A DNA stretch of 64,000 nt. Origin: Macrostomum lignano. Lineage: Eukaryota. Both the position numbers and the translations under genes were made by a program. How positions within the stretch are numbered: the stretch's first letter is position 1; every line of letters starts with the position of its first letter. Positions 926-48,460 of this stretch are shown piece by piece. The stretch lies in contig NIVC01000754.1 in assembly GCA_002269645.1 (NCBI GenBank), positions 248,001-312,000 on the forward strand. The letters are read 5' to 3'. The notes under the pieces are model-generated. The model was not told the origin of the DNA and ran no database searches. It saw only the letters and a list, made by a program, of their open reading frames with translations.

Positions 926-929
926 GCGA

Positions 930-2987: not shown

Positions 2988-2994
2988 TGTCGGA

Positions 2995-3747
<753 letters not shown>

Positions 3748-3753: not shown

Positions 3754-4218
3754 TCAGTTCTGGCCAGTCGCGCCCTTTCGCAGCCTCCTCCAGCGCCGCT
3801 TGGCCAGTCTCGGGTCCAGAGAGATTTTGTAGCCGAGCTGAGCGACTGTCTGAGCAACACAAAGGTAGGTGGCCCTTTTCGTTTTGTCCTCCACCGGTTT
3901 CTCCATCATGTCGCGGTTCACCCGGGTCATGATGTTCAGCAGGTCGTCCTCCCTATAGTGCCGCTCGATCATCCGGCACAGGGTTTGCACGAACTTGGAC
4001 CCGGTCTCAGGAAACCTGTAGGAGACCTGGTTCTCTGTGGTGGCGTAGCACAGCAGGAAGTCGGCTTTGGCCGGAGAGAAGGCCGGCAGGGGCTTCGGGA
4101 CTTGCGGCTCGTTAAACTTCGTACTGCTGTCGTCTAGGGGTGCATCGTGATGCTGACCGCGGCAGGCCTGGATGAAAAATATCTTCGGCTTGCCGGCCAG
4201 ACTCGGGCAGCAGCTCGA
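3754..4218 (-). CDS. Caspase exon with catalytic Cys (QACRG), linker and small subunit (p10)
   Basis: [30 protein letters not shown]...[33 protein letters not shown]...; this frame is missed by the ORF track upstream of 3990; stop TGA at 3754-3756. Confidence 0.92.
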
Positions 4219-7200
4219 CTTGAGGGAGGGAGAGTAGCGCTGAGAGTGGCGCTGAGAGTGGCGCTGGGAGTGGCGCTGAGAGTGGCGCTGAGAGTGGCGC
4301 TGAGAGTGGCGCTGAGAGTGGCGCTGATAGTGGCGCTGAGAGTGGCGCTGAGAGTGGCGCTGAGAGCGGCCCTGAGAGGGGCGCTAGGAGTGGCGCTGAG
4401 AGAGACTGGCGCTGAGAGTGGCGCTGAGAGTGGCGCTGAGAGTGGCGCTGGGAGTGGCGCTGAGAGTGGCGCTGAGAGGGGCGCTGAGTGTGGCGCTGAG
4501 AGTGGCGCTGAGAGGGGTGCTGAGAGTGGCGCTGAGAGTGGCACTGAGAGTGGCACTGAGAGTAGCGCTGAGAGCGGCGCTGAGAGTGGCGCTGAGAGTG
4601 GCGCTGGGAGTGGCGCTGAGAGTGGCGCTGAGAGTAGCGCTGAGAGTGGCGCTGGGAGTGGCGCTGAGAGTGGCGCTGAGAGTGGCGCTGAGAGTGGCGC
4701 TGATAGTGGCGCTGGGAGTGGCGCTGGGAGTGGCGCTGAGAGTGGCGCTGGGAGTGGCGCTGAGAGTGGCGCTGGGAGTGGCGCTGAGAATGGCGTTGAG
4801 AGTAGAAATGAAAGTGCCGCTGAAAGTAGCGGAAAAATATTTACAGCTTCTGCACCCACCTGAAATATTTTGGTGACATCAGGAATTTTGCACAGCCTTC
4901 CGTCGAATCCGTACACGCCGTCCGGGCTGCCGTGTGCCATGAGAAAGCAGACAAAGCAGCCGTGCCGCTCCAGCTGGTCTGAGCGCTGCAGCTGCCTCAG
5001 GCATTGGAGAATTCCATCGGCTGTGAGGTCCTCCTCCAACGTCACGGTAAATCGCAGCTTTCCGAAGACTTCCTTCACTCGCTCCACATCCCACTGTGAG
5101 CCTTCGCGATCCTCAAAGCGGCTAGCTGGGTACTTGTTGATGTTGATGATGAGGCAGAAGCCTTGCGGGTCCGTCACTCGGTAGAAATCTTCAAGCCTGA
5201 AATGCCGCCAGAGTTTTTGCTGTTCTGTAGCTGTGTGTGATGTAGCTGTGTGCTGTAGCTGTGTGCTGTAGCTGTGTGTGATGTGTGATGTGTGATGTGT
5301 CGTGAGTGACGCGCTCCCAGAGGTGCTCCGTGCGTACAACGTGCCAGAGCTGCTGATTTCTGCTGTCATGGCGCTGTACCACGGCACGACGGCTGCTGTC
5401 TCAACACCGGACGGCCTATCGGATTTCTTCGAGACATCCTCCGGGGTGCTCCAGGGAGATACGCTAGCGCCGTTCCTATTTATTCTGGTGCTTGACTGGG
5501 TGCTACGGACTGCTCTGCCTTCCAACGACGACGGCTTTCTGCTGCGGCGACGCGTGGGTCGACGCCAACCAGAAAGACGGCTCAGCGTGCTTGGCTACGC
5601 CGATGACCTCGCCCTGCTGTCCTCGACCGTCCTCGTCCTCGTGTCCTCGTCGAGGGCGCCCAACGTCAGCTGGATAGGCTGGTTGCTGTTGCGGCGAGCG
5701 TCGGCCTGGTGGTCAACACGCAGAAGACCGCCGTGCTATGCGTGCCGGACGACACCGAGGCTGCAATCTTCTGCCGAGGCGCTGACGGACAGGCGAGTGA
5801 GCTTCCAAGATGTCAGCAGTTCGTCTACCTCGGCGGTCTGGTTCCCGACGTCCGCGAGGATCTGCGGCGTCGCCAAGGACTTGCCTGGGCTGCCTTTCGT
5901 TCTATAAGGTCAGTCCTGCAGTCCGAGGCCCTACCGGACCGCCAGAGTGCGGAGCTGTTCCAGGCGGTGATCGAGACCGTCCTGTTATACAACTCCGAGA
6001 CCTGGACGCTGACAGACTCGCTCGAGGCTGAAGTCGACGCGGCGCACGCTGGTCTGCTGCGCGCCGCCTTCGAGATCGGCAACGAGCGAGTCACCAACAC
6101 GGCGCTCTATCATCGCGCCGGCCTGGCCCGTCCTAGCGATCTGCTGCGCCGTCGGCGACTCCAGCTGGCAGGCCACGTCATCCGCGCCGAGGCCTACTTT
6201 CCGGAGCCGGTGCAGGAGGTGCTGCTACTTACGTTGTAGGCACCCTACCGGCGGGGACAGGCGAGGACTCGGCGCTACGTCGACTGTCTGCTGGCTGACG
6301 CCGGCGCCCCGGACTCTGCCGGCGGTGCGGCCTTTGTTCGCGCCCAAGCTTCGAAGCGCGCCATCTGACGCTGCTTTTGCGAACTGGCAGCGTACTCTGT
6401 TGTTGTTGTTGTTGTTGTTGTGATGTAGCTGTGTGTGCTGTAGCTGTGTGCTGTAGCTGTGTGTGCTGTAGCTGTGTGCTGTAGCTGTGTATGCTGTAGC
6501 TGTGTGCTGTAGCTGTGTGTGCTGTAGCTGTGTGTGCTTTAGCTATGTGCTGTAGCTGTGTGATGTAGCTGTGTGTGCTGTAGCTGTGTGCTGTAGCTGT
6601 GTGTGTTTTAGCTGTGTGCTGTAGCTGTGTGTGCTGTAGCTGTGTGTGCTGTAGCTGTGTGTGCTGTAGCTGTGTGCTGTAGCTGTGTGTGCTGTAGCTG
6701 TGTGATGTAGCTGCGTGTGCTGTAGCTGTGTGCTGTAGCTGTGTGTGATGTAGCTGTGTGTGCTGTAGCTGTGTGTGCTGTAGCTGTGTGTGCTGTAGCT
6801 GTGTGCTGTAGCTGTGTGTGATGTAGCTGTGTGCTGTAGCTGTGTGTGCTGTAGCTGTGTGCTGTAGCTGTGTGCTGTAGCTGTGTGCTGTAGCTGTGTG
6901 CTGAAGGAACTCACGGCACTGCCAGAGGCTCATCGAAGTAGATCTTGTCGTCGTACCTAAATAGGCAGTGCAAAGTCTTAAGTCAGGAAATTCAGATAGG
7001 AGTCCATCCATGCTCTGTGCTTCATTATATCCTTTTTATTGTTTTTTATTAAAATAACTATTCCTAATAATTTTGAGCTCAAATGCCACACCACAATGCT
7101 TCTTGCTGGTGTCTCACAGCTCGCAGGCAGCTGAACATTAATATTCAACTGGAATCTGCAGTCAAACTGCACTGCAAACTCCCTCAATGCAGCTCAGTCA

Positions 7201-9297
7201 GTGTCTGCTGCCCATTTAAACTAAAAAAATATAAAAATGCCCACTCAGAGCAACTGCAGTCAGCTGCTCAATATTCAATCACAAATTACAGCATATTGTT
7301 TATCAATGATAAATCAAAGTCAGAGAGACATTCTCAGTCGCCATGGAAACTCACCCACGCAGCAGCTCCGCCAGTTCGCTCTTTCCGTTCTGTGTGGCGA
7401 AATCCAGCGCAGTCCTGCCGTCTCTGTCCTTCAGGCTCCAATCCGCCCCTGAGTCCAGCAGAACCCGACCGACTGCGGCGGCGGTGGCGAGGGGCGCAGT
7501 GAAGACTGCCTCCATGAGGGGCGTGAATTCACAAAAATCCGTAGCATTGGCGGAGGCTCCGGCAGCCAGCAGAGCGGAGGCTATTGCAGAATTGCCAGCC
7601 TCGGCTGCAAGGTGCAGGCAACTGACAGTCCATGTATTTGCACAGGTGGGGTCACCCAGCAGCACCAGCTGCTCCCACAGAGCCTCATCACCGCACGAGC
7701 TGTTCTGAGCTGCCCACATCAACGCGGTGCGACCGAATTCGTCAGGCAGGTCGCAGATGCCGCGGGTCGCCGCTCGCCGCAGCCCCGCCGAGTCGCCCGC
7801 CTCGGCCAGCCGCTGCAGTTCCTGTCGATCCGCCTCCTCCTGCAAAGGCGAGCGGGAAATTTGAGCACAGCTGCTCAGCTGCAGCCGCATCGGCACCGCA
7901 GATGCCGCTCACCTGGGCTGTCAGGCCGGAAATCTCGCCGAGTGCATCTACGACCAGCCGCATCTCCCTGCAACAGCAAAAATGAGCAGCCAATTTGCAG
8001 TTTTCTCAAATCAGTCAATTACCATGGCCAAAATAAAATTATCTTGTACGATTAAATCTCTTTGATCTGCTTCAATTTTCGTACTAAATTCAGTAGACAG
8101 AAATTCCTAGTTTTCTGAGCTGCTCGCAGATGGAGTTTCCCAGAGGACAGCAGCAGCTCTGCAACAATCAGCATTGGCGAGAGCGCATCCGACTTCTCAC
8201 ACGCAGCTCATTTTCCATTTCTGCAGCATGAGTTTCCTTCCATCTCAAAATGTCTCACAAAGCACCCGCGCACAGCCTCCCAGTTCTCCATCTACAGCTC
8301 AACACACACACTCCCACTGCACACCGAGGCCCTACAGCTTCCATTATCGACTGAGATCAACCGCCACCCCATTGGCTGGGAGGCAGCCAGCCAATCACAG
8401 CTCTCGTTCATAAGCAGTCAGAGACAGAGACAAGCTCAGCTGACTGGCTCTGATTGGCTGGCCTGAGACTGCAGCTCTGGCCACCCCAGCCGAATGCTGC
8501 AAAACTTGATGGACACAGCAGCGAACTGCTCACTCACCGCTCGATGTAGCTGGCCAGCTCTGAGTGACTGCTGAACCTCGCCAGGTCCGACGCCGTCCGA
8601 CCCTCGCGATTCTTCAGTCCGAGCAGCCGCGACCTCTTCGAGTTTCCGTGCTCAAAGCACTCATTGAACCTCCATTGTCTGAGCAGGTGCAGCAGGTGCT
8701 TGGCGCATTTCCAGCTTCCAGTCCGCGCCGCCTCCATCATCGGAGTGGCGCCGTTGTCGTTCCGCAGCCACTTCGCATCGAACGATAGCAGCGTCAGCAG
8801 CCGCAGGTGGTCCCGCCGGGCTGCCAGGTGCGCAGCCGTGTCGCCGTTCGCGTCAGCCGCCTTGGGGTTCGCGCCCAGCTCAAATAAGTACAAGATGCAC
8901 TTTTCAGTGTGCACGGGAGTCTCAGGAGCGTCGGCCACCAGCATGAGGACGGTCCGACGAGCTGCATCAGCGCTGGTGACCAGCTGGAGCGTTGCCAGCC
9001 GCCGCACTTGGTCGAAGTCACCTCGGATGACGTCATGAGCGAGAGTCTGGAGATCGGCTGGTGAGTCTCCGACGCTTGCCCGGTTGTTGGGGTCCGGCTG
9101 AGTGAGTTCCTGCAACTGCAATTGAGGCACCCAAGCTGCACATTCAAACATGTGAGTGAGTTCCTGCAAAATGCAATCAAGCCTAAGGCATATTTATTTA
9201 AGGCATTTTTACTTACTTTTTCATCAGAAAAGAGAGATGGTTTCTTTTTTCTTTTTATTAACTTATTAAGCAAGGCTTTTGGCCCTCGCTCTGCCAT
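3754..9297 (-). CDS. Ankyrin-repeat caspase, 7 coding exons, about 657 aa (N-terminal basic peptide - ANK module 1 - ANK module 2 - caspase p20/p10)
   Basis: Exons in transcript order: 9297-9217 ([27 protein letters not shown]), 9046-8538, 7967-7913 ([18 protein letters not shown]), 7839-7355, 6956-6915 ([14 protein letters not shown]), 5196-4860, 4218-3754. All six introns are GT-AG and the phases match (0,2,0,2,2,0), giving one open frame of 1974 nt. Caspase motifs [24 protein letters not shown] and [12 protein letters not shown]; several GxTALMxAA / TAAHLAA ankyrin motifs. Confidence 0.85.
4235..4800. repeat. 12-bp minisatellite (agtggcgctgag) in a caspase intron
   Basis: Fills intron 4219-4859. 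Confidence 0.92.
4860..5196 (-). CDS. Caspase large-subunit (p20) exon with catalytic His
   Basis: [22 protein letters not shown]...[21 protein letters not shown]...[20 protein letters not shown]; acceptor catttcag, donor CAG/gtgggt. Confidence 0.92.
5225..6902. repeat. tgtagctgtgtgc 13/15-bp satellite, split by the LINE into 5225-5300 and 6422-6902
   Basis: Same motif on both sides of the LINE. Confidence 0.9.
5295..6422 (+). mobile_element. 5'-truncated, inactive non-LTR retrotransposon (RTE-like reverse transcriptase C-terminal part) inside a caspase-gene intron
   Basis: RT motifs [20 protein letters not shown] and [11 protein letters not shown], followed by YLG and the RTE-type [10 protein letters not shown]...RRLQLAGHV region. 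A short insertion near 5630-5650 shifts the frame, there is a premature TAG at 6237-6239, and a (GTT)n 3' tail at about 6397-6422. Confidence 0.88.
7355..7839 (-). CDS. Ankyrin-repeat module 2 exon of the ANK-caspase gene
   Basis: [54 protein letters not shown]; acceptor tttgcag, donor GG/gtgagt. Confidence 0.9.
8538..9046 (-). CDS. Ankyrin-repeat module 1 exon of the ANK-caspase gene
   Basis: [42 protein letters not shown]; acceptor atctccag, donor CG/gtgagt. Confidence 0.9.
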
Positions 9298-9914
9298 GGC
9301 TGCAAGCTCAGTCCGTCAGTCGCAGGTGTCTCAGCTCAGCCCGAGAGTCCGGCAGGGCAGCGGCCGCCTCTGCAGCTGGTTTTATTGGCCCTGGAGCAGC
9401 TGCAGCGAATTCCTTCTCACCCTGCCTTTCTGCCTCTCCCATTGGCTCTGAGGGAACAGCAGAACTGCTGCAATGTCAGTGCGTGGCTACTTGAAGCAGT
9501 CAGTGTGCGACTGCGGATTTGCTTGCAAAGTTTGTGCAATTAAAAAGCAAATAAGAATAATATTTTTATTCGCAGGCCAGCTCCATTTATCCATCAGGAA
9601 TTTCAAACTGGAAAATACTTTGTTGCGGTGAAGCAGATCAGTGCAAACATAAACAGCTTGAGCACATGATTGTTCTTCTCAGACTCAACTGCAAGACTCG
9701 GACTGCTACTCATCAGTAGTCAGTAAAGCTTTCACAAACTCATAGGTGTTTTTTTAGTGGATGGAATTCCGCTCAAGTTTTATTTTGACAAAAATTGTTT
9801 TGAGTCGCAACTGCACTGGTTGAAAACTCCACGAGTTCGACAAAATGAATAGGGAGATGAGAGCACTGCAGCATGAGGTGCATATGATCGGTATTTTTTG
9901 GAATTTGGAAAAGC

Positions 9915-10915
9915 CAGACTCCCCTCTGCTCCAATCCCTATCTCCCCTCTCTTCTAATCCCCCTACCCCCCCCTCTCCTCCATTCCCTATCTTCCCTCTT
10001 CTCCATTCCCTATCTTCCCTCTTCTCCATTCCCTATCTTCCCTCTCCTCCATTCCCTATCTTCCTCTTCTCCATTCCCTATCTTCCCTCTTCTCCATTCC
10101 CTATCTTCCCTCTCCTCCATTCCCTATCTTCCTCTTCTCCATTCCCTATCTTCCCTCTCCTCCATTCCCTATCTTCCTCTTCTCCATTCCCTATCTTCCC
10201 TCTCCTCCATTCCCTATCTTCCCTCTCCTCCATTCCCTATCTCCCCTCTCTTCTAATCCCTACCCCCCTCTCCTCCATTCCCTATCTCCCCTCTGCTCCA
10301 ATCCCTATCTCCCCTCTCTTCTAATCCCCCTACCCCCCCCTCTCCTCCATTCCCTATCTTCCCTCTTCTCCATTCCCTATCTTCCCTCTTCTCCATTCCC
10401 TATCTTCCCTCTTCTCCATTCCCTATCTTCCCTCTCCTCCATTCCCTATCTTCCTCTTCTCCATTCCCTATCTTCCCTCTCCTCCATTCCCTATCTTCCC
10501 TCTCCTCCATTCCCTATCTCCCCTCTCTTCTAATCCCTACCCCCCTCTCCTCCATTCCCTATCTCCCCTCTGCTCCAATCCCTATCTCCCCTCTCCTCCA
10601 TTCCCTATCTTCCCTCTGCTCCAATCCCTATCTCCCCTCTCCTCCATTCCCTATCTTCCCTCTGCTCCAATCCCTATCTCCCCTCTCCTCCATTCCCTAT
10701 CTCCCCTCTCCTCCATTCCCTATCTTCCCTCTTCTCCATTCCCTATCTTCCCTCTGCTCCAATCCCTATCTCCCCTCTCCTCCATTCCCTATCTCCCCTC
10801 TCCTCCATTCCCTATCTCCCCTCTGCTCCAATCCCTATCTCCCCTCTCTTCTAATCCCTACCCCCCTCTCCTCCATTTCCTATCTTCCCTCTCCTCCAAT
10901 CCCCATCTCCCCTTT
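9915..10915. repeat. Pyrimidine-rich minisatellite (ctcctccattccctatcttccc-like, about 21-22 bp)
   Basis: Direct inspection. Confidence 0.88.
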
Positions 10916-11449
10916 TTTCCTTTCTACCAGTTCACTCTCTCCACTGTCTCTCATTTTTTCTTACGATTTTCAGCTATAAGCCACTGAAATATTGCTGATA
11001 CGACTAGATAAGAATCCAATCACGTTACTATAGTAAGTAGTATATCCATACCTTGTTACGATGCACACTATTTTACATTTGCCAATTTGTATTGGAAAAC
11101 TACAGATATGCTTTCAGAGAACAGTGGACCTGCATTGCGTTATGAAAAATGTAGTTCAGTCAGGTGCAATATCTTTATATTGCTCTGGAAACTCAATTAA
11201 AAATCGAAGTCCTTCGCATAATTTTGAATCCTTTGCAGATATTTAATTAAGTTTTTGGAACGAATTTACACTATCATTTTTCACTACGAGCTATATAAAA
11301 TGAATAAAAATGTGGAAGACCTGGAAAAATCGCTTTTTGTTCACGCTTAAAATGCTTTGTTGTCATGGTAACAAAAACGGTGCCATGAGTGTGTGTTGTG
11401 TTCTCAGACCTCTCTGAGTGTGTGATCATGGTCATGGCCATGATCTGCT

Positions 11450-12115
11450 CTCCCCTATCTGCTCTCCCCTATCTCCTCTCCCTATCTCCTCTCCCCTATC
11501 TCCTCTCCCTATCTCCTCTCCCCTATCTCCTCTCCCTATCTCCTCTCCCCTATCTCCTCTCCCTATCTCCTCTCCCCTATCTCCTCTCCCCTATCTCCTC
11601 TCCCCTATCTCCTCTCCCTATCTCCTCTCCCCTATCTCCTCTCCCTATCTCCTCTCCCCTATCTCCTCTCCCTATCTCCTCTCCCCTATCTCCTCTCCCT
11701 ATCTCCTCTCCCCTATCTCCTCTCCCCTATCTCCTCTCCCCTATCTCCTCTCCCCTATCTCCTCTCCCCTATCTCCTCTCCCCTATCTCCTCTCCCCTAT
11801 CTCCTCTCCCCTATCTCCTCTCCCCTATCTCCTCTCCCCTATCTCCTCTCCCCTATCTCCTCTCCCCTATCTCCTCTCCCCTATCTCCTCTCCCCTATCT
11901 CCTCTCCCCTATCTCCTCTCCCCTATCTCCTCTCCCCTATCTCCTCTCCCCTATCTCCTCTACCCTATCTCATCTCCCTATCTCCTCTCCCCTATCTGCT
12001 CTCCCTATCTGCTCTCCCCTATCTCCTCTCCCATATCTCATATTTCTTCTCTCATTTCCCTTCTCTCCTCACACTTCTCTCGTCTTCTCTCCTCCTATTC
12101 CACTCCTCTCTCCTT
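11450..12115. repeat. 14/15-bp pyrimidine-rich minisatellite (cccctatctcctct)
   Basis: Direct inspection. Confidence 0.9.
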
Positions 12116-12119
12116 TCTT

Positions 12120-12184
12120 CTCTCCCGCAGGCATGCGCTAGATTCTCTATCTGGCACTTCAGGTAAAACTGTTTGCAAACCCTG
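12120..12184. mobile_element. Right end of a related hAT MITE copy, left end not found
   Basis: cccgcagGcatgcgctagattct..atctgg...aggtaaaa...aaccctg aligns with 34275-34334 and is likewise preceded by a CT-rich array. Confidence 0.55.
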
Positions 12185-14684: not shown

Positions 14685-15448
14685 GTGCTGGGTGTCTGAG
14701 TGCTGGGTGTCTGAGTGCTGGGTGTCTGAGTGCTGGGTGTCTTCGTGCTGGGTGTCTTCGTGCTGGGTGTCTTCGTGCTGGGTGTCTTCGTGCTGGGTGT
14801 CTGAGTGCTGGGTGTCTGAGTGCTGGGTGTCTGAGTGCTGGGTGTCTGAGTGCTGGGTGTCTGAGTGCTGGGTGTCTGAGTGCTGGGTGTCTTCGTGCTG
14901 GGTGTCTTCGTGCTGGGTGTCTGAGTGCTGGGTGTCTGAGTGCTGGGTGTCTGAGTGCTGGGTGTCTGAGTGCTGGGTGTCTGAGTGCTGGGTGTCTGAG
15001 TGCTGGGTGTCTGAGTGCTGGGTGTCTGAGTGCTGGGTGTCTGAGTGCTGGGTGTCTGAGTGCTGGGTGTCTGAGTGCTGGGTGTCTTCGTGCTGGGTGT
15101 CTGAGTGCTGGGTGTCTGAGTGCTGGGTGTCTTCGTGCTGGGTGTCTGAGTGCTGGGTGTCTTCGTGCTGGGTGTCTGAGTGCTGGGTGTCTGAGTGCTG
15201 GGTGTCTGAGTACTGGGTGTCTGAGTGCTGGGTGTCTGAGTGCTGGGTGTCTGAGTGCTGGGTGTCTGAGTGCTGGGTGTCTGAGTGCTGGGTGTCTGAG
15301 TGCTGGGTGTCTGAGTGCTGGGTGTCTGAGTACTGGGTGTCTGAGTACTGGGTGTCTGAGTACTGGGTGTCTGAGTGCTGGGTGTCTGAGTGCTGGGTGT
15401 CTGAGTGCTGCGTGTCTGAGTGCTGGGTGTCTGAGTGCTGGGTGTCTG
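14685..15448. repeat. 15-bp minisatellite (gagtgctgggtgtct)
   Basis: Direct inspection. Confidence 0.93.
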
Positions 15449-15892
15449 CAGCGCCTTCACTTGACCTCTCCAGGCACTTCTGGTGAGATGCCGCCGCCCG
15501 TCACGTGACCCGCTGGGCGCGCTCTGAGCTCAGGTGACTGGGAGCAGCTCGGCTACCCTCAGGGGCTGAAGAGCTGATGGCTCCGGACTCGATCCCAGAC
15601 CTCCGGGCCTGAGCCAATCCGTCAGTGCGATGGGACTGGGAGTTCACTGCGTTTGTTCCGGTTGATTAGTGATGTCGTTGCTTTTATGGCACTGGATTTC
15701 AAACTCCTGCATCTGCAAATCCAGTTGCCAAAGAAGTGGCTAGTAGCAAAGAGGTTGGTTAGAGTCTCACTGCATTTCTTGAACTAGTTGGGCAGCTAAC
15801 CTGTACTGAATGCTGTGGCCCAAGCAATGCCTAGGAATTCAGTAACGAATGCTCGCCAGGGAGCTGCGTCTGTCCCAGACACAGTATTGATT

Positions 15893-16372
15893 ATGCAGGC
15901 ACAGTATTGATTATGCAGGCACAGTATTGATTATGCAGGCACAGTATTGATTATGCAGGCACAGTATTGATTTTGCAGGCACAGTATTGATTATGCAGGC
16001 ACAGTATTGATTTTGCAGGCACAGTATTGATTATGCAGGCACAGTATTGATTTTGCAGGCACAGTATTGATTATGCAGGCACAGTATTGATTTTGCAGGC
16101 ACAGTATTGATTATGCAGGCACAGTATTGATTATGCAGGCACAGTATTGATTATGCAGGCACAGTATTGATTATGCAGGCACAGTATTGATTATGCAGGC
16201 ACAGTATTGATTTTGCAGGCACAGTATTGATTATGCAGGCACAGTATTGATTTTGCAGGCACAGTATTGATTATGCAGGCACAGTATTGATTTTGCAGGC
16301 ACAGTATTGATTATGCAGGCACAGTATTGATTATGCAGGCACAGTATTGATTATGCAGGCACAGTATTGATT
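15893..16372. repeat. 20-bp minisatellite (cacagtattgattatgcagg)
   Basis: Direct inspection. Confidence 0.93.
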
Positions 16373-16445
16373 ACTGAAACTGGATGGGAGCAATGGCTCT
16401 CGTATTTCTTCTGTGAATTTCTGTTTTGAAGTCGTGTGAATCTAA

Positions 16446-16650
16446 GTGCCTCTCCCTGAGTGCCTCTCCCTGAGTGCCTCTCCCGGAGTGCCTCTCCCGG
16501 AGTGCCTCTCCCGGAGTGCCTCTCCCGGAGTGCCTCTCCCGGAGTGCCTCTCCCGGAGTGCCTCTCCCGGAGTGCCTCTCCCGGAGTGCCTCTCCCGGAG
16601 TGCCTCTCCCGGAGTGCCTCTCCCGGAGTGCCTCTCCCGGAGTGCCTCTC
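16446..16650. repeat. 14-bp minisatellite (gtgcctctcccgga)
   Basis: Direct inspection. Confidence 0.92.
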
Positions 16651-17032
16651 CTGCGGCGTAATGCTATTCGCAGGCCTTAGTAATTTAATTTTACACATTG
16701 CTTCAACAAGCAATGCATTTCACACAGATCGAATCAGACAACTTATCCAACTATGCGATCAAAACTTAAGCGACATTTTCATAGGGCAAGAGATTTGTTC
16801 CGAAAGCCATGGTTAAAAACACAAGGCTATGACATTAATAAATACTCATTCGGGCGCTGACGTCTCGTGAATGTTTTGTGCTAGGCTGCATTGACACCGA
16901 AAAGCGATGCCGATCTCTGGTTCTACTTGATCAGGTGGGCCCGGTATTGCATTTCTTCCCCAACTGAGCAACGCAACCCAGCTTTTGACCTCCGACTGAA
17001 TTTGGCTGGACAGGTGTTCTCCAGACACTGGG

Positions 17033-17226
17033 CCTGTCCCAGGGTTGCTCACATGAGGACTTGTCCCAGGGTTGCTCACATGAGGACTTGTCCCAGGGTT
17101 GCTCACATGAGAACTTGTCCCAGGGTTGCTCACATGAGGACTTGTCCCAGGGTTGCTCACATGAGAACTTGTCCCAGGGTTGCTCACATGAGGACTTGTC
17201 CCAGAGTTGCTCACATGAGGACTTGA
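17033..17226. repeat. 27-bp minisatellite, about 7 copies
   Basis: cagggttgctcacatgaggacttgtcc. Confidence 0.9.
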
Positions 17227-17509
17227 CCTGCCTGCGACCAATTTCTTCTGCAGCTGCAGCAGGCAAAGTTGCCCGTGCCGTGTGCGGTCTGCAGCCTGAA
17301 AAAACCCGGCTTGTCACAAGTCCAATTCGGTTTAGACTTCATTGCCGAGCATCTCTCTCGAGCTTCTCTTCGAGACCTCGGGCCTGAATTTTGGAACTGA
17401 GGATGGACTGACCCAGTCTATTGACACTACCTCGAGCTCACATTCCAAAGTCAGTGAAGCCATCTGGCTAAAGGCCTGGTGTTGTGTGGTCCGCTGAGAA
17501 GGGTCCTCT

Positions 17510-17735
17510 TATCTCTGCAGCTGCCTCTACTCTCTTTGTAGCTGCATCTACTCTCTCTGCAGCTGCATCTACTCTCTCTGCAGCTGCCTCTACTCTCTCT
17601 GCAGCCGCCTCTACTCTCTCTGCAGCCGCCTCTACTCTCTCTGCAGCTGCATCTACTCTCTCAGCAGCTGCCTCTACTCTCTCTGCAGCTGCCTCTACTC
17701 TCTCTGCAGCAGCCTCTACTCTCTCTGCAGCTGCT
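17510..17735. repeat. 21-bp minisatellite (gcagctgcctctactctctct)
   Basis: Direct inspection. Confidence 0.9.
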
Positions 17736-18228
17736 GTTTCAGCATCTCACTCTCTTCCACCGCCCCAATTTCATTTAACATTTTATCAGCAGTAGAGTTA
17801 AAAAACGACAGCCACTCAGTGCTGAGAGTCGGGCAGTTCCGGTATGCTAGAGAGTCGCACATGAGTATATTTGAGTAATTCCTCACAAAGCTCACAAAAT
17901 AGCGACAGCAGCTGATGGCTAACAGCAAAGAAATTGAGTGAAGCAAAGCATTTGAGCAGTTAAACTGCTTGAGGATAGAGGAGATCAGTTAACGCCTGCG
18001 GTGCAGATAAACAAGTTGAGCTTAAATGAGAAACGTCAATAGGTGCATCTGGAACTCAGTCACAGGGGAATTGAAGCAGTATGCAAGTTTCAGCACTGCA
18101 AAGAGTCACGTAAAAAATTCAGGAAAATGGAAAAAAAGCACAAAACAAACTGTAAATAGTGCTTTACTTACGCGCATCGTGCATAAAATATTCAAAATCT
18201 TTACAAACATATTTAGAAGCATCTCGGC

Positions 18229-19164
18229 TTAGCGCTGCGAGTCAGACTTTTTCACCAGGAACTCGTGCTCCAGCAGCTCCTGTGCGGATCTTCTTCTCCT
18301 GCGGTCCTTGGCGGTGCAGCGGCTGTAGAAATCCCTCAGTTCCGCAGACCGGCCGTCCGGCAGGGCGGGGGCGCCCTTCCTGTCAAGATGCTGGGCCATT
18401 TCCCAGAAGCTTTTGACTCTGGTGAATGGTTTGTTACCGGAGGCCATCTGGAAGACCGAGCAGCCGAACGCCCAGATGTCCGACTCTCTGCTGCACTGCA
18501 CGCATTCCGAGGTGCCGATTCCGAGCAGCTCTGGCGCCATGAAGTTCAGAGTGCCTTTCAATGCCTCCGGGAATGATGAGTGGCGACTGACTATCTGCTC
18601 CAGCTTGATTGACAGGCCGAAGTCAATCAGCTTGATTCGCGTGTTGTCAGCACAAATAATTATGTTCGAGCAGTTGATGTCTCTGTGGATCACGGGCGGC
18701 TGCCGGCTGTGCAGGTAGATCAGCGCGCGGCAGATCTGCGAGCGGTCGGTCAGTGAGCAGCATCATTCATGGGAACATGGAACAGGAGCAAAGGATGCAC
18801 AATGCTCACCTGCTCGCTGAAGTCTCGAATCGTCAGCTCGTACAGTGGCCTGTTGTCGATAAACCTCTCCAAGCTTCGGCCGTCCAGCAGCTCCATGAAC
18901 ACAACGACTGTGGCGGGCTCCGGCTGAGCGATGTGCAAGAACCTGACGATGTTGGGATGCCGCAGTCGGCACAGGTTTCTCTCGCTCTCGACAGCTCTGT
19001 GGATCTCTGTGCTCACAGAGGTTTGGTCATCACCGAGCTGCACAGGCAGTCTGAGAGTCTTGGCAGCGCACCTGATGTCTCTGTCAGTGACAACTTCCTG
19101 AATGTCACCAAAGAATCCTCTTGCAACGAAGCCATCGGAGTCCCAACTCTCCCTGAAAACGGGG
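18229..19164 (-). CDS. Kinase domain 2 (two exons, intron 18736-18809)
   Basis: VARGFFGDI (degenerate Gly loop), CAAKTL, HPNIVRF, IHRDINCSN, LIDFGLS, GTLNFMAPE, SDIWAFGC; stop at 18229-18231. Confidence 0.9.
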
Positions 19165-22100
19165 CTGTTAGGAAAAGTGAAAAGCGAATCAGGATGCGTT
19201 AAGCCGCTGATCAGAATTTTGGCATCGCCTGACAGACAGGCTAAAATGAGGAGATGCACGGGAGTCACAGCAGTTGAATGAATTGATTGGATTTCATTCC
19301 AGTAAAACTCAGCTCTCACAGATTCGCGGCAAATTGCTCGCACTGTTTTTGAGTCTGATCAGGGCTTCTGCTTCATCGAAGGGAATTGAGCACAATATTT
19401 CTCCGAGCTTCAAGCTGGCGCCTCAATGATCAGTGCTCAAAGTATGCGGTGCAACTTTAGCGTGAGCACATGTTGAGGCCGCTTGACTACTGATGAAAAG
19501 TGCAACATTGGTCTCACCTCTGCATCAGCATCATATCGCACAGGTATCTAAGTCTAGCCGAATTACTGTACATTTTTACCTGACGATGAGGAACTCGTGC
19601 CCCATCAGCTCCAGTGCGGACTTTCTGCTTTTGCGGTCCATGGCGGTGCAGCGGCTGTAGAAGTCCTGCAGCTCCGCAGAGCAGCCCGTCAGCAGGGCGG
19701 GGGCACCGCCGCTTCTCAGCTTCTCGGGCAGCGTCTGCGGCATTTTGTGCTCAGCGAAGGGCCGCCTGCCCGAGGCCATCTGGAAGACCGAGCAGCCGAA
19801 CGCCCAGATGTCCGACTCTCTGCTGTACCGCGGGCTGTCCGACTCTTCTGGTGCCAGCAGCTCCGGAGCCAAGAAGTTAAGAGTGCCTTCGGGGGTGGCT
19901 TTGGAGGCTGAGATGTGGCTGACTGACTGCTCCAGCTTGACTGACAGGCCGAAGTCGATCAGCTTGATTCGCGTGTTGTCGGCACAAACAATTATGTTCG
20001 AGCAGTTGATGTCTCTGTGGATCACGGGCGGCTGCCGGCTGTGCAGGTAGATCAGCGCGCGGCAGATCTGCGAGCGGTCGGTCAGTGAGCAGTCATCATT
20101 CATGGGAACATGGAACAGGAGCATCAAGGCTGCACAATGCTCACCTGCTCGCTGAAGTCTCGAATCGTCAGCTCCTCCAGTGGCCTGTTGTCGATAAACC
20201 TCTCCAAGCTTTTGCCGTCCAGCAGCTCCATGAACACAACGGCTGTGGCGGGCTCCGGCTGAGCGATGTGCAAGAACCTGACGATGTTGGGATGCCGCAG
20301 TCGGCACAGGTTTCTCTCGCTCTCGACAGCTCTGTGGATCTCTGTGCTCACAGAGGGCAGCTCATCAACAAGCTGCACAGGAAGTTTAAGAGTCTTGGCA
20401 GCGCACGTGACGCCCGTGTCAGTTCGAACTTCGTGGACTTCGCCGAAGCCACCGCGACCGATGAGGCGAACGGCGTCCCAGCGCTCCCGGAACGGGGGGC
20501 CTTCGGGACTGAGAGGATGCGAATTGAAGCAATGAGGGATAATTTGCATGCTGTAGCTGTGTGCTGTAGCTGTGTGTGCTGTAGCTGTGTGCTGTAGCTG
20601 TGTGATGTAGCTGTGTGTGCTGTAGCTGTGTGTGCTGTAGCTGTGTGCTGTAGCTGTGTGCTGTAGCTGTGTGTTGTAGCTGTGTGTGCTGTAGCTGTGT
20701 GCTGTAGCTGTGTGCTGTAGCTGTGTGTGCTGTAGCTGTGTGTGCTGTAGCTGTGTGCTGTAGCTGTGTGTGATGTAGCTGTGTGTGATGTAGCTGTGTG
20801 TGCTGTAGCTGTGTGTGCTTTAGCTATGTGCTGTAGCTGTGTGTTGTAGCTGTGTGTGCTGTAGCTGTGTGCTGTAGCTGTGTGCTGTAGCTGTATCCTG
20901 TAGCTGTGTGCTGTAGCTGTGTGTGCTGTAGCTGTGTGTGCTGTAGCTGTGTGCTGTAGCTGTGTGTGATGTAGCTTTGTGTGCTGTAGCTGTGTGCTGT
21001 AGCTGTGTGTGCTGTAGCTGTGTGCTGTAGCTGTGTGCTGTAGCTGTGTGCTGTAGCTGTGAGTGATGTAGCTGTGTGCTGTAGCTGTGTGTTGTAGCTG
21101 TGTGTGCTGTAGCTGTGTGCTGTAGCTGTGTGCTGTAGCTGTGTGTGCTGTAGCTGTGTGCTGTAGCTGTGTGCTGTAGCTGTGTGCTGTAGCTGTGTGC
21201 TGTAGCTGTGTGCTGTAGCTGTGTGCTGTAGCTGTGTGCTGTAGCTGTGTGCTGTAGCTGTGTGTGCTGTAGCTGGGTGTGCTGTAGCTGTGTGCTGTAG
21301 CTGTGTGTGATGTAGCTTTGTGTGCTGTAGCTGTGTGCTGTAGCTGTGTCCTGTAGCTGTGTGCTGTAGCTGTGAGTGCTGTAGCTGTGTGTGCTGTAGC
21401 TGTGTGCTGTAGCTGTGTGTGATGTAGCTTTGTGTGCTGTAGCTGTGTGCTGTAGCTGTGTCCTGTAGCTGTGTGCTGTAGCTGTGTGTGCTGTAGCTGT
21501 GTGTGCTGTAGCTGTGTGCTGTAGCTGTGTGTGATGTAGCTTTGTGTGCTGTAGCTGTGTGCTGTAGCTGTGTGCTGTAGCTGTGTGCTGTAGCTGTGTG
21601 CTGAAGGAACTCACGGCAGTGCCATAGGCTCATCGAAGTAGATCTTGCCGTCGTACCTAAATGGGCAGTGCAAAGTGTGAAGTCAGGAAATTCAGATAGG
21701 AGTCCATCCATGCTCTGTGCTTCATTATATCGTTTTTATTGTTTTTTATTAAAATAACTATTCCTAATAATTTTGAGCTCAAATGCCACACCACAATGCT
21801 TCTTGCTGGTGTCTCACAGCTCGCAGGCAGCTGAACATTAACATTTAACTGGCAATCTGCAGTCAAACTGCACTGCAAACTCCATTTAAACTACAAAACT
21901 CATTCAATATTCAATCATAAATTACAGCATAATGTTTATCAATGATAAATCAAAATGATAGTGACATTCTCAGTCGCCATGGAAACTCACCCACGCAGCA
22001 GCTCCGCCAGTTCGCTCTTTCCGTGCTGTGTGGCCAAATCCAGCGCAGTCCTGCCGTCTCTGTACTTCAGGCTCCAATCCGCCCCTGAGTTCAGCAGAAC

Positions 22101-23782
22101 CTGACCGACTGCGGCGGCGGTGGCGGGGTGCGCAAAGGCCGCCCCCATGAGGGCCGTGAATTTCCAGTGACCCCTGGCATTGGTGGAGGCTCCGGAAGTC
22201 AGCAGAGCGGAGGCTGCGGCAGAATTGCCAGCCAAGGCTGCATGGTGCAGGCAACTGTCAGCACATTTATCCGCACAGGTGGGGTCACCCAGCTGCACCA
22301 GCTGCTCCCACAGAGCCTCATCACCGCACGAGCTGCTTTGAGCTGCCCACATCAACGCGGTGCGACCCTCATCGTCAGGCAGGTCGCAGCTGCCGCAGGT
22401 CGCCGCTCGCCGCAGCCCCGCCGAGTCGCCCGCCTTGGCCAGCCGCTGCAGTTCCTGTCGATCCGCCTCCTCCTGCAAAGGCGAGCGGGAAATTTGAGCA
22501 CAGCTGCTCAGCTGCAGCCGCATCGGCACCGCAGATGCCGCTCACCTGGGCTGTCAGGCCGGAGATATAGCCCTGTGCATCCACAACCAGCCGCATCTCC
22601 CTGCAACAGCAACAATGAGCAGCGATGTCGCAGTTGTCTCAAACACGACAATTACGATCGCGAAAATAAACTTTAAGAAGTTGCAGGACAAAATTTTTTC
22701 TCTTATCGATCACATGGATGCCTACCTGCCTACCTACCTACCGACAAACCATTTTTAGTATATGAATTCTTAATTATCTGAGCTGCCCACAGACAGTTTC
22801 GAAGAGGACTGCAGCAGCTCTGCAACAATCAGCATTGGCGAGAGCGCATCCGACTTCTCACACGCAGCTCATTTTCAATTTCTGCAGCATGAGTTTCCTT
22901 CCATCTCACAATGTCTCACAAAGCACTCACGCACAGCCTCCCAGTTCTCCATCTGCAGCTCAACCCACACACTCTCACTGCAATACGAGGCCCTACAGCT
23001 TCTGCGCAACAGCAACTGAGATCAACCGCCACCCCATTAGCTGGGAGGCATGGACACAGAAGCGAACTGCTCACTCACCGCTCGATGTAGCTGGCCAGCT
23101 CTGAGTGGCCACTGCGACTCGCCAGGTCCGACGCCGTCCGACCCTCGGAATTCTTCAGTTCGAGCAGCCTCTTCGAGTTTCCATGCTCCAGACACTTAAT
23201 GAAACTTTTCTGCCTGAGCAGGTGCAGCAGGTGCTTGGCGCATTTCCAGCTTCCAGTCTGCGCCGCCTCCATCAGCGGAGTGGCGCCGTTGTCGTTCCGC
23301 AGCCACTTCGCATCGAACGAAAGCAGCGTCAGCAGCCGCAGGTGGTCCCGCCGGGCTGCCAGGTGCGCAGCCGTGTCGCCGTTCGCGTCAGTCGCCTTGG
23401 GGTTCGCGCCCAGCTCAAATAAGTACAAGATGCACTTTTCAGTGTGCACGGGAGTTTCAGAAGCGTCGGCCACCAGCATGAGGACGGTCCCACGAGCTTC
23501 ATCAGCGCTGGTGACCAGCTGGCGCGTTGCCAGCCGCCGCACCTGGCCGAAGTCACCTCGGCTGACAAGCTGGTCGAGAGTCTGGAGATTCGAACATGTG
23601 AGTGAGTTGCTGCAACTACAACTGAGGCACCCAAGCTGCACACGAGGAAGTAAGTACAAAGAAAAAATATTTTATTTAATTTACTGCTTTAACACTCAGA
23701 AACAAATATAATACTTTAATCAAAATTAAACAGTAATTTAATAAGGTACCTTATCCTGTTCCATAGAGGCTTCACTGCCCAT
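18229..23782 (-). CDS. Ankyrin-repeat protein with two Ser/Thr kinase domains (STE11/MAP3K-like), about 942 aa if both kinases are spliced into one mRNA
   Basis: Exons: 23782-23750 (MGSEASMEQDK), 23581-23079, 22600-22546, 22472-21991, 21656-21615 (YDGKIYFDEPMALP), 20508-20145, 20067-19580, 19164-18810, 18735-18229. All junctions are GT-AG and in phase. The link from kinase 1 to kinase 2 is the least certain, because unspliced read-through gives a TAA at 19576-19578. Confidence 0.78.
19580..20508 (-). CDS. Kinase domain 1 (two exons, intron 20068-20144)
   Basis: IGRGGFGEV, CAAKTL, HPNIVRF, FMELLDG, IHRDINCSN, LIDFGLS, GTLNFLAPE, SDIWAFGC. Confidence 0.92.
20550..21602. repeat. tgtagctgtgtgc satellite, paralogous to 5225-6902
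   Basis: Same motif in the equivalent intron; shares the variant gctttagctatgtg (about 6537 and 20818). Confidence 0.92.
21991..22472 (-). CDS. Ankyrin-repeat module 2 exon of the ANK-kinase gene
   Basis: Paralogous to 7355-7839, with the same splice sites and phases. Confidence 0.9.
23079..23581 (-). CDS. Ankyrin-repeat module 1 exon of the ANK-kinase gene
   Basis: Paralogous to 8538-9046, with the same splice sites and phases. Confidence 0.9.
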
Positions 23783-48213: not shown

Positions 48214-48256
<43 letters not shown>

Positions 48257-48281
48257 ATGTCTGTATGTCTGTCTGTCTGTA

Positions 48282-48328
<47 letters not shown>

Positions 48329-48417: not shown

Positions 48418-48460
<43 letters not shown>

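Follow-up and report, generated by a model that had tools for sequence, protein, structure and literature searches.

Adjacent ankyrin-caspase and ankyrin-tandem-kinase genes of Macrostomum lignano share a four-exon ankyrin block

Two neighboring minus-strand genes in a 64,000-nucleotide window of the Macrostomum lignano assembly (contig NIVC01000754.1:248001-312000) share a four-exon ankyrin block that is 85-92% identical at the DNA level, introns included, and join it to different C-terminal domains. Gene A (~680 aa, 7 exons) ends in a caspase-8-like domain with intact catalytic residues, and gene B (~960 aa, 9 exons) ends in a pair of STE-like kinase domains. The explanation that we favor, and to which we give about an even chance, is that these are adjacent members of a Macrostomum-specific family of interchangeable exon modules, in which a recognition-type cassette is combined with swapped effectors. 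The earlier interpretation from the sequence alone is partly supported: its modular, lineage-specific, and recognition-like aspects all fit the data.

Gene structures and the shared block

Models for both genes were built by hand from the sequence; they contain only GT-AG introns and keep the reading frame throughout (Table 1). All splice sites are canonical in the resulting long open frames. The predicted splicing draws on the sequence and on transcript-derived paralogues, not on transcripts of genes A and B themselves. Such paralogues favor acceptor 9115 for exon 2 of gene A (an alternative in-frame acceptor would start this exon at 9163) and acceptor 19164 for the second kinase of gene B. 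Likewise, the KIFQ/SSCC splice of the last gene A exon is seen in paralogue P0220, and the splicing between the gene B kinases matches P0005. The phase-2 acceptor of the gene A caspase (cattttcag/G) is kept in the paralogous copy L002; that the AG-free tract ahead of it is short counts against the gene A model.

When the two regions were compared by blastn, positions 6397-8385 aligned with 21079-23050 (85.2% identity over 2,060 columns) and positions 8509-9054 with 23050-23589 (91.6% over 546), both with E = 0, and the match is therefore not due to chance. Identity between the genes is 92.3% in the ANK1 exon, 80.3% in the following intron, 87.3% in the 55-nt exon, 100% in the 73-nt intron, 90.9% in the ANK2 exon, 94.9% in the intron after it, and 92.9% in the micro-exon. 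The two genes agree in intron phase (0 before ANK1, 2 after ANK1, 0 after the 55-nt exon, 2 after ANK2, and 2 after the micro-exon), and the modules that follow ANK1 are symmetric in phase 2. A sequence-only reading of the window had described this block, with its alignable introns and identical phases, and the alignments and models bear it out. Both genes have Ank_2 matches (Pfam, E 3e-16 to 3e-23), and an AlphaFold model (mean pLDDT 84.6) scores above 90 in the ankyrin region and has a flexible hinge where the micro-exon ends.

The same reading placed the divergence of the two genes at the flanking introns. The first exons are indeed unrelated, polybasic in gene A and MGSEASMEQDK in gene B, but the 5' boundary does not fall exactly at the phase-0 intron; homology ends inside exon 2 (~9054 / 23589), and a short segment upstream of that point is rearranged. 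On the other side, the claimed contrast of one caspase with two kinases holds, with a Peptidase_C14 match in gene A (E 4e-20) and two Pkinase matches in gene B (E 2e-31 and 6e-27; Pfam). Polybasic N-termini also occur in transcript-derived paralogues P0002, P0003, and P0005. The N-terminus of gene B matches the N-myristoylation pattern G-{EDRKHPFYW}-x(2)-[STAGCN]-{P}, and MGSxxS N-termini are also found in P0009, P0018, and P0020.

The gene A caspase is closest to caspase-8 (PDB 6px9, E 1e-40) and retains the catalytic His (MAHG) and Cys (QACRG) and the Arg/Gln/Arg P1 pocket. The gene B kinases are closest to ASK1/WNK/STE20 (E 1e-25), and the beta-3 Lys, HRD, DFG, and APE are all present; the glycine loop of the second kinase is degenerate (ARGFFG). 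The catalytic-loop Lys is replaced in all family kinases (HRDINCSN vs HRDIKGDN), and kinase activity is therefore not assured.

Table 1. Features of genes A and B, in window positions
Feature	Position	Strand	Description
Gene A exon 1	9217..9297	-	ATG at 9297, 27 codons, polybasic N-terminus, donor GTAAGT, phase 0
Gene A exon 2, ANK module 1 (repeats R0-R4)	8538..9115	-	Preferred acceptor gives DEK LQELTQPDP; phase 2 end
Gene A 55-nt exon	7913..7967	-	Predicted beta hairpin between two ankyrin stacks
Gene A exon 4, ANK module 2	7355..7839	-	Phase 0 start, phase 2 end; binding-surface positions hypervariable
Gene A 42-nt micro-exon	6915..6956	-	Predicted flexible hinge; phase 2 at both ends
Gene A junction-intron minisatellite, (CACAGCTACAGCA)n	6419..6903	-	Begins ~12 nt past micro-exon donor
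Reverse-transcriptase (non-LTR retroelement) fragment	5302..6239	+	Antisense; inserted in gene A minisatellite
Gene A caspase exon 1	4860..5196	-	p20 N-terminal part, catalytic His in MAHG
12-mer minisatellite	4230..4803	-	Fills intron within gene A caspase domain
Gene A last exon	3754..4218	-	QACRG catalytic Cys, intersubunit linker, p10, stop codon 3754-3756
Gene B exon 1	23750..23782	-	MGSEASMEQDK; phase 0 donor
Gene B exon 2, ANK module 1	23079..23635	-	Alternative phase-0 acceptor would place exon start at 23581
Gene B 55-nt exon	22546..22600	-	Second exon of ankyrin block, hand-built model
Gene B exon 4, ANK module 2	21991..22472	-	Pfam Ank_2 and model
Gene B 42-nt micro-exon, YDGKIYFDEPMALP	21615..21656	-	Hand-built model
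Gene B junction-intron minisatellite	20549..21603	-	Junction unit of gene A; 1055/1106 intron bases
Gene B kinase unit 1	19580..20508	-	Exons 20508-20145 + 20067-19580; 852 nt, phase 2 at both ends
Gene B kinase unit 2	18229..19164	-	Exons 19164 or 19152-18810 + 18735-18229; stop TAA 18229-18231

Family architectures and exchange of effectors

A protein search found about 45 M. lignano protein clusters (E <= 3e-48) and no detectable cassette relative outside Macrostomum; the next match, with 26% identity, is a generic ankyrin protein. Listing the domains that follow the cassette, as the sequence-only reading had proposed, revealed several different C-terminal arrangements: one to three kinases, a caspase, a kinase plus a caspase (triple fusions P0041 and P0182), an unknown 560-aa domain, or nothing. 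Among transcript-derived paralogues, the micro-exon is joined to a caspase in P0001 and to two kinases in P0005. P0179 is an exon-skipping model in which ANK1 is spliced straight to the micro-exon, in frame.

Trees built from the cassette and from the caspase give conflicting histories. The gene A cassette groups with kinase genes in a clade with 100% support, and its caspase is only 44-50% identical to every other caspase of the family. Together with the varied effectors, the phase-2 symmetric modules, and the restriction of strong relatives to M. lignano, this discordance supports the earlier proposal of a lineage-specific, exon-shuffled family. In a neighbor-joining (NJ) tree with poor basal support, the family caspases form a Macrostomum group apart from a separate, conventional ANK-caspase of M. 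lignano (Mlig019067), which groups with schistosome caspases and caspase-8.

In all genes of the young clade, the junction intron consists almost wholly of one minisatellite. In gene A, this repeat is interrupted by the retroelement fragment (RVT_1, E 1.3e-5, below Pfam's cut-off) and resumes past it at 5221-5298. The minisatellite is also present at rearranged half-genes, cassette-only or caspase-only, and at cassette-cassette arrangements. Unequal or non-allelic recombination within the junction intron that the genes share, most probably in the minisatellite itself, may generate new combinations. Deeply diverged members do not carry this specific minisatellite in their junction intron, and it therefore cannot explain older swaps.

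Genes A and B belong to a head-to-tail, same-strand array of at least four genes in the order B > A > C > D. A caspase > kinase locus that is paralogous, and possibly homeologous, to this one shares its layout. The suggestion that A and B form a cooperating pair is weak because they sit in this longer tandem array and other family arrays contain kinase genes only. The triple fusions are the one positive hint of cooperation.

In the mechanism that we propose, the N-terminal, two-part ankyrin solenoid (~370 aa) would act as a pro-domain, like DED or CARD in other caspases, for the effector encoded beyond the phase-2 intron, either a caspase-8-like protease or between one and three STE-like kinase units. 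Its conserved ANK1 half would dock on a common partner or assembly platform, and its variable ANK2 half would bind diverse ligands or targets. Clustering upon binding would activate the initiator-type caspase by induced dimerization and the kinases by trans-phosphorylation, and the alternative first exons, myristoylation-type or polybasic, would set subcellular location. The setting, most likely cell-death or stress/defense signaling, is the least secure step.

Ankyrin surface variability and alternative readings

The first ankyrin half is nearly invariant, whereas the second is hypervariable at canonical ankyrin binding positions on a conserved framework. At the a priori binding positions (2, 3, 5, 13, 14, and 33), entropy is 1.67 bits compared to 0.45 bits elsewhere (p 1e-9), and non-synonymous changes accumulate there at 3.2 times the rate of synonymous changes in framework codons (p 2e-16). 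Pairwise dN/dS is 0.45-0.49 for the kinase exons, 0.76 for ANK1, and 1.31 for ANK2 (64% of pairs >1). The 55-nt and ANK2 exons differ more between the two genes than the introns flanking them do (9.5% vs 4.2%, p 0.002). On a tree-based count, the omega of ANK2 is 0.93 and does not differ from 1, and the hypervariable codons also show more synonymous changes; positive selection therefore cannot be told apart from patchy gene conversion or from relaxation limited to the surface. Support for the "sensor" of the earlier reading is limited to this pattern of variability.

Relaxed constraint and gene conversion are central to a different reading, doubtful but to be taken seriously, in which gene A is an ordinary apoptosis initiator active in developmental or homeostatic cell death, the flatworm replacement for DED caspases that the literature proposes, and unrelated kinases share its duplicated scaffold by coincidence. 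The ANK2 variability would then stem from a repeat-rich genome of recent polyploidy instead of from diversifying ligands. ANK caspases are described in the literature as sister to DED caspases and as candidate initiators (PMC11463336), the gene A caspase is nearest caspase-8, and the genome has large recent duplications (PMC5730564); the ANK2 omega and the raised synonymous changes are consistent with this reading as well. However, the size of the family, the focusing of variability on binding positions, and the elevated rate there argue against it, the conventional ANK-caspases could fill the housekeeping role, and the triple fusions join kinase and caspase in one protein.

A reading that we consider unlikely is that gene A, perhaps along with gene B, has no function: it would be a recent duplicate, made chimeric incidentally through tandem duplication and minisatellite-mediated rearrangement, in which disabling mutations have yet to build up. 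Neither gene is called in the GenBank annotation, and a protein search found no protein with >86% identity to any part of them; the caspase exons in L006 likewise have no called gene. The annotation is RNA-seq based and excluded transcripts overlapping repeats (PMC5730564), so this absence is weak evidence. The retroelement fragment in the junction intron, the half-genes, and damage to sister copies of the gene A caspase (L002 lacks the last beta strand, and the P0102 and P0220 models are frameshifted) also point toward decay. Nevertheless, open frames, canonical splice sites, and catalytic motifs are intact in both genes, dN/dS is 0.37 for the gene A caspase against L002 and 0.45-0.49 for the kinase exons, and none of the 11 genomic copies each of the ANK1, ANK2, and kinase exons contains a stop codon. 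Many lineage-specific genes of Macrostomum evolve fast, and the general pattern of a lineage-specific, tandemly expanded, fast-evolving family would suit a role in reproduction, with the hypervariable surface reflecting sexual conflict or germline-specific targets; this is quite improbable, as caspase-8-like and STE-like kinase effectors are atypical of reproductive proteins. An assembly or haplotype artefact, named by the sequence-only reading as a possible refutation, has next to no probability. Although the assembly is known to be redundant (PMC5730564), the two copies, 12 kb from each other on a single PacBio-based contig, diverge by 8-20% along their length and have different effectors, and the layout recurs at the paralogous locus. 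Therefore, we excluded this source of the duplicated block.

Comparison with known systems

For the preferred reading of a modular family, the nearest known proteins are the ANK caspases of platyhelminths, first noted in Schistosoma by Lee et al. 2014 (as cited in PMC11463336) and published in 2024 (Genome Biol Evol evae204, PMC11463336). The earlier impression that such proteins had not been described in animals was thus mistaken. In both cases, an N-terminal ankyrin pro-domain replaces DED or CARD, and the catalytic domain is closest to caspase-8 and DED caspases. That study restricts the clade to parasitic flatworms, whereas M. lignano is a free-living macrostomid, and here the pro-domain is one particular cassette of four exons that kinases use as well. 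A literature protein with ANK cassette, kinase, and caspase is evidently of the same family as P0041 and P0182, but in genes A and B the kinase and caspase lie in separate neighboring genes. The shared cassette, kinase-only members, and gene structure come from the present analysis rather than from the paper on that protein.

Caspase-8 and RIP-kinase modules likewise place one interaction module (DD, DED, or RHIM) on a protease and on Ser/Thr kinases, which would allow recruitment to a common platform. Here the module is an ankyrin solenoid rather than a death fold or RHIM, the kinases are STE-like rather than RIPK/TKL, and assembly is putative. Plant tandem kinase proteins (WTK/RPG1 type) also carry two kinase domains in one protein, with unit number varying among paralogues. 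Their origin is independent, and the M. lignano units differ in sharing motifs rather than pairing kinase with pseudokinase, in following an N-terminal ankyrin domain, and in having no NLR link. Animal ankyrin-kinases (ILK, TNNI3K, DAPK, and RIPK4/ANKK1) combine the same two domain types in one chain, with N-terminal repeats in ILK and TNNI3K; none of them ranks with the best matches of the kinase in the structural database, and the cassette has no detectable counterpart beyond Macrostomum.

The analogy to NLR/STAND, fungal NWD/HET, and bacterial Avs proteins, drawn in the earlier reading, extends to a repeat domain with exchangeable effectors and variability concentrated in the repeats. It fails on a defining feature: the Pfam and family searches found no NACHT or NB-ARC/STAND NTPase, and the repeats here are N-terminal and the effectors C-terminal, so the family is not a member of this class. 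In lamprey VLR leucine-rich repeats and designed ankyrin repeat proteins, diversity comes from somatic assembly or library design, whereas here it lies among germline paralogues and binding is presumed; all three combine a conserved framework with variability at binding positions, which for ankyrin repeats are the same six.

Gene models and effector domains

Models of gene A (an ankyrin cassette followed by a caspase) and gene B (the same cassette followed by two kinases) were built by reading the minus strand, allowing only GT-AG introns and keeping the frame throughout. The gene A model is 696 aa long, or 680 aa with the acceptor that paralogues use, and the gene B model is 956-960 aa long. 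The cassette comprises a first ankyrin exon (ANK1), a 55-nt exon, a second ankyrin exon (ANK2) and a 42-nt micro-exon. The sequence-only reading had claimed this block as common to both genes with identical splice phases, and blastn, the in-frame GT-AG models and Pfam confirm it. With blastn, the two gene regions align at 85.2% identity over 2060 columns (6397-8385 versus 21079-23050) and at 91.6% over 546 columns (8509-9054 versus 23050-23589), and the 55-nt exon, the 42-nt exon and every intron phase correspond identically between the genes. In Pfam, the two large cassette exons of each gene match ankyrin repeats, and the effector parts match Peptidase_C14 (gene A) and, twice, Pkinase (gene B). 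The first exons bear no relation to each other: gene B starts with MGSEAS, which fits an N-myristoylation pattern, and gene A with a polybasic stretch. Both types of first exon recur across the family with either effector.

Positions of the modelled genes and other features in the window
Feature	Position	Strand	Remark
Gene A exons	9297-9217, 9163/9115-8538, 7967-7913, 7839-7355, 6956-6915, 5196-4860, 4218-3754	-	in-frame GT-AG model
Gene B exons	23782-23750, 23635-23079, 22600-22546, 22472-21991, 21656-21615, 20508-20145, 20067-19580, 19164/19152-18810, 18735-18229	-	in-frame GT-AG model
Gene B kinase catalytic loops (HRDINCSN)	~20020-19997 and ~18688-18665	-	Lys of Ser/Thr-kinase HRDxKxxN is Asn
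Gene A junction minisatellite	6419-6903 and 5221-5298		split by antisense reverse-transcriptase fragment
Antisense reverse-transcriptase fragment	5302-6239	+	RVT_1 E 1.3e-5, below Pfam cut-off
Gene B junction minisatellite	20549-21603		
Prefoldin subunit ORF	32398-32856	+	Pfam E 8e-23; unrelated, single-exon-looking, upstream of array
NUDIX hydrolase ORF	34498-34947	+	Pfam E 1e-18; unrelated, single-exon-looking, upstream of array
Two exons with HRM (hormone-receptor) domain of secretin-type GPCRs	53277-53693 and ~60500-60935	-	E 6e-13 and 4e-15; the latter opens a long ORF that is otherwise minisatellite
Dense micro-/minisatellites (examples)	293-3747, 9919-12039, 14682-17734, 24111-25417, 48027-63960		

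The dense satellites give rise to long but spurious ORFs in every frame, so lists of ORFs compiled mechanically cannot be trusted in this window. Genes A and B are not among the annotated M. lignano proteins (best identity to any part, 86%), and a search of protein clusters with the two models returned no representative with at least 90% identity over the model length. After reverse complementation, the window shares its final 5,290 bases, without a difference, with the beginning of locus L006, which places it at NIVC01000754.1:248001-312000 of assembly Mlig_3_7; the L006 annotation has no called gene over the gene A caspase exons. The GenBank annotation is derived from RNA-seq, but transcripts overlapping repeats were filtered out (PMC5730564). 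Therefore, the absence of genes A and B is a caveat rather than proof of silence. The join of the ankyrin pro-domain to the caspase in gene A comes from the in-frame GT-AG model, and the same join is present in two transcript-derived paralogues, P0001 and P0018.

The gene A caspase matches Peptidase_C14 (Pfam E 3.7e-20), and its closest solved structure is caspase-8 (PDB 6px9; E 1e-40 over residues 7-220), followed by caspase-3/7. It keeps the catalytic His (MAHG), the catalytic Cys (QACRG) and the Arg/Gln/Arg pocket that reads P1 Asp, and its MAHG, QACRG, DREGS and SYR motifs align with those of 6px9. The p20/p10 fold, the His-Cys dyad and the P1-Asp pocket that mark a caspase (Peptidase_C14, clan CD) are thus all present. 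The AlphaFold model of gene A is confident (mean pLDDT 84.6, with the ankyrin region above 90). It places a beta hairpin at the 55-nt exon, separating the two helical stacks, and a low-confidence hinge where the micro-exon ends, and leaves the caspase intersubunit linker disordered. The idea that the micro-exon is a conserved caspase cleavage site (IYFD/E) was rejected because the Asp varies across paralogues (N, Y, E, I). A sister copy of this caspase in a paralogous locus (L002:1995-2985) has lost the last beta strand in frame, and in the models of two further sisters, P0102 and P0220 (locus L010), the frame is shifted over part of the domain. The KIFQ/SSCC splice is confirmed by P0220, whose model derives from a transcript.

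The two gene B kinase domains (Pkinase E 2e-31 and 6e-27) distantly match ASK1, WNK and STE20-type kinases (E 1e-25). Both retain the beta-3 Lys (AAK), HRD, DFG and APE motifs. The catalytic-loop Lys is Asn in all family kinases (HRDINCSN versus HRDIKGDN of ASK1), a change conserved across paralogues, and kinase 2 has a degenerate Gly loop (ARGFFG). Judged from these motifs, kinase activity is plausible but not assured. Kinases 1 and 2 share 70% aa identity and are recent duplicates of each other. They lie in one polypeptide in the gene B model, where their join is in frame, and P0005, a transcript-derived relative, also reads kinase 1 into kinase 2.

Family architectures and the junction intron

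The cassette is carried by about 45 M. lignano protein clusters (E <= 3e-48), and the homologue search found no closer outside relative, the next match being a generic ankyrin protein with 26% identity. Many members join the cassette to one kinase, and P0005 joins it to two. It precedes a caspase in P0001, P0014, P0016, P0018, P0020, P0022, P0027 and P0184, and a kinase plus a caspase in P0041 and in P0182 (MAHG/QACRG intact). Other members consist of the cassette without an effector, and some carry N-terminal additions, either SH3 (P0044) or Ras-like (P0036). Several family caspases are degenerate: P0001 has QAGRG, and P0041 has lost both catalytic motifs. Transcript-derived P0001 and P0005 have the micro-exon spliced to the caspase and to the kinase-kinase unit, respectively.

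Three members whose genes lie outside the window (P0031, P0032 and P0042) carry a region of about 560 aa with no recognised domain. It follows the cassette and a micro-exon-like YDGTAYFEV, and contains a GLEDSGLT motif and a cysteine cluster (CKKC...C...CTAC...C). The C-terminal 563 aa of P0031 gave no Pfam match at E <= 10 and none in a PDB sequence search, and its AlphaFold model (3-sequence alignment; mean pLDDT 32.6) is too poor for use.

ANK1, ANK2, the micro-exon and each kinase unit all end at a phase-2 boundary, and module lengths are multiples of 3 (55 + 485 = 540 nt, 42 nt for the micro-exon, and 852 nt for one kinase unit). The gene model of P0179, another relative, runs from the ANK1 exon to the micro-exon and the caspase, with the 55-nt and ANK2 exons skipped in frame. 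Likewise, kinase units occur once, twice or three times across family genes. Modules of the same phase in varied combinations with incongruent trees are the classical signature of exon shuffling. The proposal of an exon-shuffled, lineage-specific family is therefore borne out by the phase-2 modules, the domain combinations, the incongruent trees and a cassette whose strong relatives are all M. lignano proteins.

Downstream of gene A on the same strand, locus L006 holds two further cassette-kinase genes, so that the array reads B (kinase-kinase), A (caspase), C (kinase), D (kinase). At L002, which is paralogous and possibly homeologous, a copy of the gene A caspase is followed by P0005 with three genomic kinase units, and the window and L002 are collinear with 91-98% identity in non-coding DNA. 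Other arrays (L003, L004 and L005) contain kinase or cassette-only genes alone, and a constant caspase-kinase pairing is therefore unsupported. Since these arrays lack caspase genes, the adjacency of A and B reflects tandem duplication and is by itself no evidence for a cooperating pair. The modularity and lineage-specificity envisaged by the sequence-only reading stand, the sensor role stands in a limited sense, and the cooperating pair is weak. A functional link between the effectors is hinted at, in the Rosetta-stone manner, by the kinase-caspase triple fusions alone.

In every recently diverged family gene whose DNA was available, the junction intron between micro-exon and effector is nearly all one minisatellite, (CACAGCTACAGCA)n, which begins about 12 nt past the donor and stops 25-60 nt before the acceptor. 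Besides genes A and B, it was found at L001, L002 (twice), L003, L004, L005 and L006. Homology between A and B stops at its 3' end. The same minisatellite also occurs in rearranged settings: between two cassettes (L003), after effector-less cassettes (L011 and an upstream gene in L004), ahead of a caspase lacking any cassette within 8 kb (L010), and upstream of an ANK1 exon (L006). We infer that it may serve as a substrate for unequal recombination. The array is not a family-wide feature: the junction introns of the strongly diverged members P0018 and P0027 lack it, and that of P0041 has a different array of 13-mers. The minisatellite can therefore account for recent swaps and not for older ones.

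At L003:10533-17306, two complete cassettes follow one another with the minisatellite alone between them and one kinase after them; this yields either one gene with a double cassette or a gene that has lost its effector together with the intergenic spacer. The name Mlig001598 is shared by P0011 (cassette) and P0220 (caspase), and was rejected as proof of a joint transcript. Each of the two loci is a half-gene on its own, with the minisatellite at its end or its start.

Module histories, variation and possible function

In neighbour-joining (NJ) trees, the gene A cassette lies inside a clade with 100% support whose other members are all kinase genes. With every other family caspase, the gene A caspase shares just 44-50% identity, and together with P0102 it makes up a deep branch of its own. 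Thus, in gene A the caspase lineage is old and the attached cassette is young or homogenised. In either case, the disagreement between the two trees indicates that modules were exchanged.

Among 19 close cassettes, ANK1 repeats R1-R3 are nearly invariant, and variation is focused on R4, the 55-nt exon and ANK2-repeat positions 2, 3, 5, 13, 14 and 33. Across 11 genomic copies, entropy is 1.67 bits at a-priori binding positions versus 0.45 in the framework (p 1e-9). Median pairwise dN/dS is 0.45-0.49 for kinase exons (0-2% of pairs above 1), 0.76 for ANK1 (20%) and 1.31 for ANK2 (64%), and no stop codons occur in 11 copies of the kinase, ANK1 or ANK2 exons. Divergence between A and B is higher in the 55-nt and ANK2 exons than in the introns on either side (9.5% versus 4.2%, p 0.002). 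A formal omega above 1 for ANK2 is not established: the pairwise median is 1.31, but a tree-based count gives 0.93 overall. At binding positions, non-synonymous changes run at 3.2 times the synonymous rate seen in framework codons (p 2e-16), and synonymous counts are also raised at binding-position codons. On this pattern of substitution, diversifying selection on the ANK2 surface is likely, though not separable here from patchy gene conversion.

We regard it as an even call whether the ankyrin pro-domain serves as a bipartite module for recruitment and recognition. Its conserved half would dock and its variable half would bind a ligand, so that a caspase-8-like initiator or kinases would be brought to one site, where clustering would activate them. 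Recombination in the junction intron would renew the combinations of modules. A rival account, which we find doubtful, is that an ordinary apoptosis initiator and unrelated kinases happen to carry ankyrin surfaces under relaxed constraint. Unlikely as well is the possibility that these are non-functional recent duplicates; it is most relevant to gene A, and damage to the sister copies of the gene A caspase speaks for it. That the family evolves fast in connection with reproduction seems improbable. An assembly artefact has next to no probability: genes A and B have diverged by 8-20%, segment by segment, and the duplication is therefore real.

A bolder and rather improbable proposition is that Macrostomum possesses a family of intracellular receptors independent of NLRs, in which a germline-diversified ankyrin solenoid, with conserved docking and hypervariable recognition halves, is wired directly to caspase-8-like or kinase effectors, and new receptor-effector combinations come from recombination in a shared, minisatellite-filled phase-2 intron. 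If true, such receptors would represent an architecture for innate immunity or cell-death surveillance that had not been recognised in animals before. The family also illustrates clearly, in an animal, how exon shuffling with symmetric phase-2 modules continues today. Furthermore, it raises testable questions, including the partners of each half, activation by clustering, and the response to infection or stress, in a model that is transgenic and amenable to RNAi.

Comparison with known systems

A central STAND NTPase defines NLR and other STAND receptors, and no NACHT/NB-ARC (STAND) NTPase was matched by Pfam in the window genes or the 45 listed family members. The likeness to NLRs drawn from the sequence therefore does not amount to membership. 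Plant tandem kinases (TKPs) have two kinase domains per polypeptide, as does gene B, and are further characterised by shared descent, a division of labour between kinase and pseudokinase, and an NLR partner through which they act. The resemblance is by analogy only. The gene B kinases best match animal STE-type kinases. The family kinases are not orthologues of ILK, TNNI3K, DAPK or RIPK4.

The belief that this design was undescribed in animals proved wrong for its ANK-caspase half. ANK caspases came to notice first in Schistosoma, and a 2024 analysis across lophotrochozoans describes them as the sister group of DED caspases and as limited to parasitic flatworms; it also reports for M. lignano a caspase whose pro-domain is kinase-like (PMC11463336). 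Literature searches for the shared cassette, ANK-kinase members, module structure or variability found no paper, nor did a search for the gene identifiers. As in the gene A model, platyhelminth ANK caspases carry the ankyrin pro-domain N-terminal to the caspase. In contrast to the published restriction, M. lignano is free-living and has several annotated proteins with Ank and Peptidase_C14 domains. These include two conventional ankyrin-caspases with active-site motifs intact or nearly so, P0259 (Mlig019067 g1-g4, SHG/QACRG) and P0270 (Mlig001045, QACRT). In the caspase NJ tree, which has weak deep support and includes no neodermatan ANK caspase, the conventional proteins group with schistosome caspases and caspase-8, and P0259 groups with a Schistosoma caspase and vertebrate caspase-8. 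When the schistosome caspase P0142 was used as a query for homologues, all the caspases retrieved were schistosome proteins that lack ankyrin domains.

The conventional M. lignano proteins contradict the published restriction, which is probably a sampling statement rather than a defining feature, and they correct the view that ANK caspases are confined to parasitic flatworms. To the published flatworm proteins, Macrostomum adds a pro-domain that is common to caspases and kinases, with one conserved half and one half hypervariable at the binding surface, as well as single proteins in which kinase and caspase are fused. Finally, its gene structure, with phase-2 modules, a common minisatellite intron and half-genes broken there, suggests how such combinations arise.
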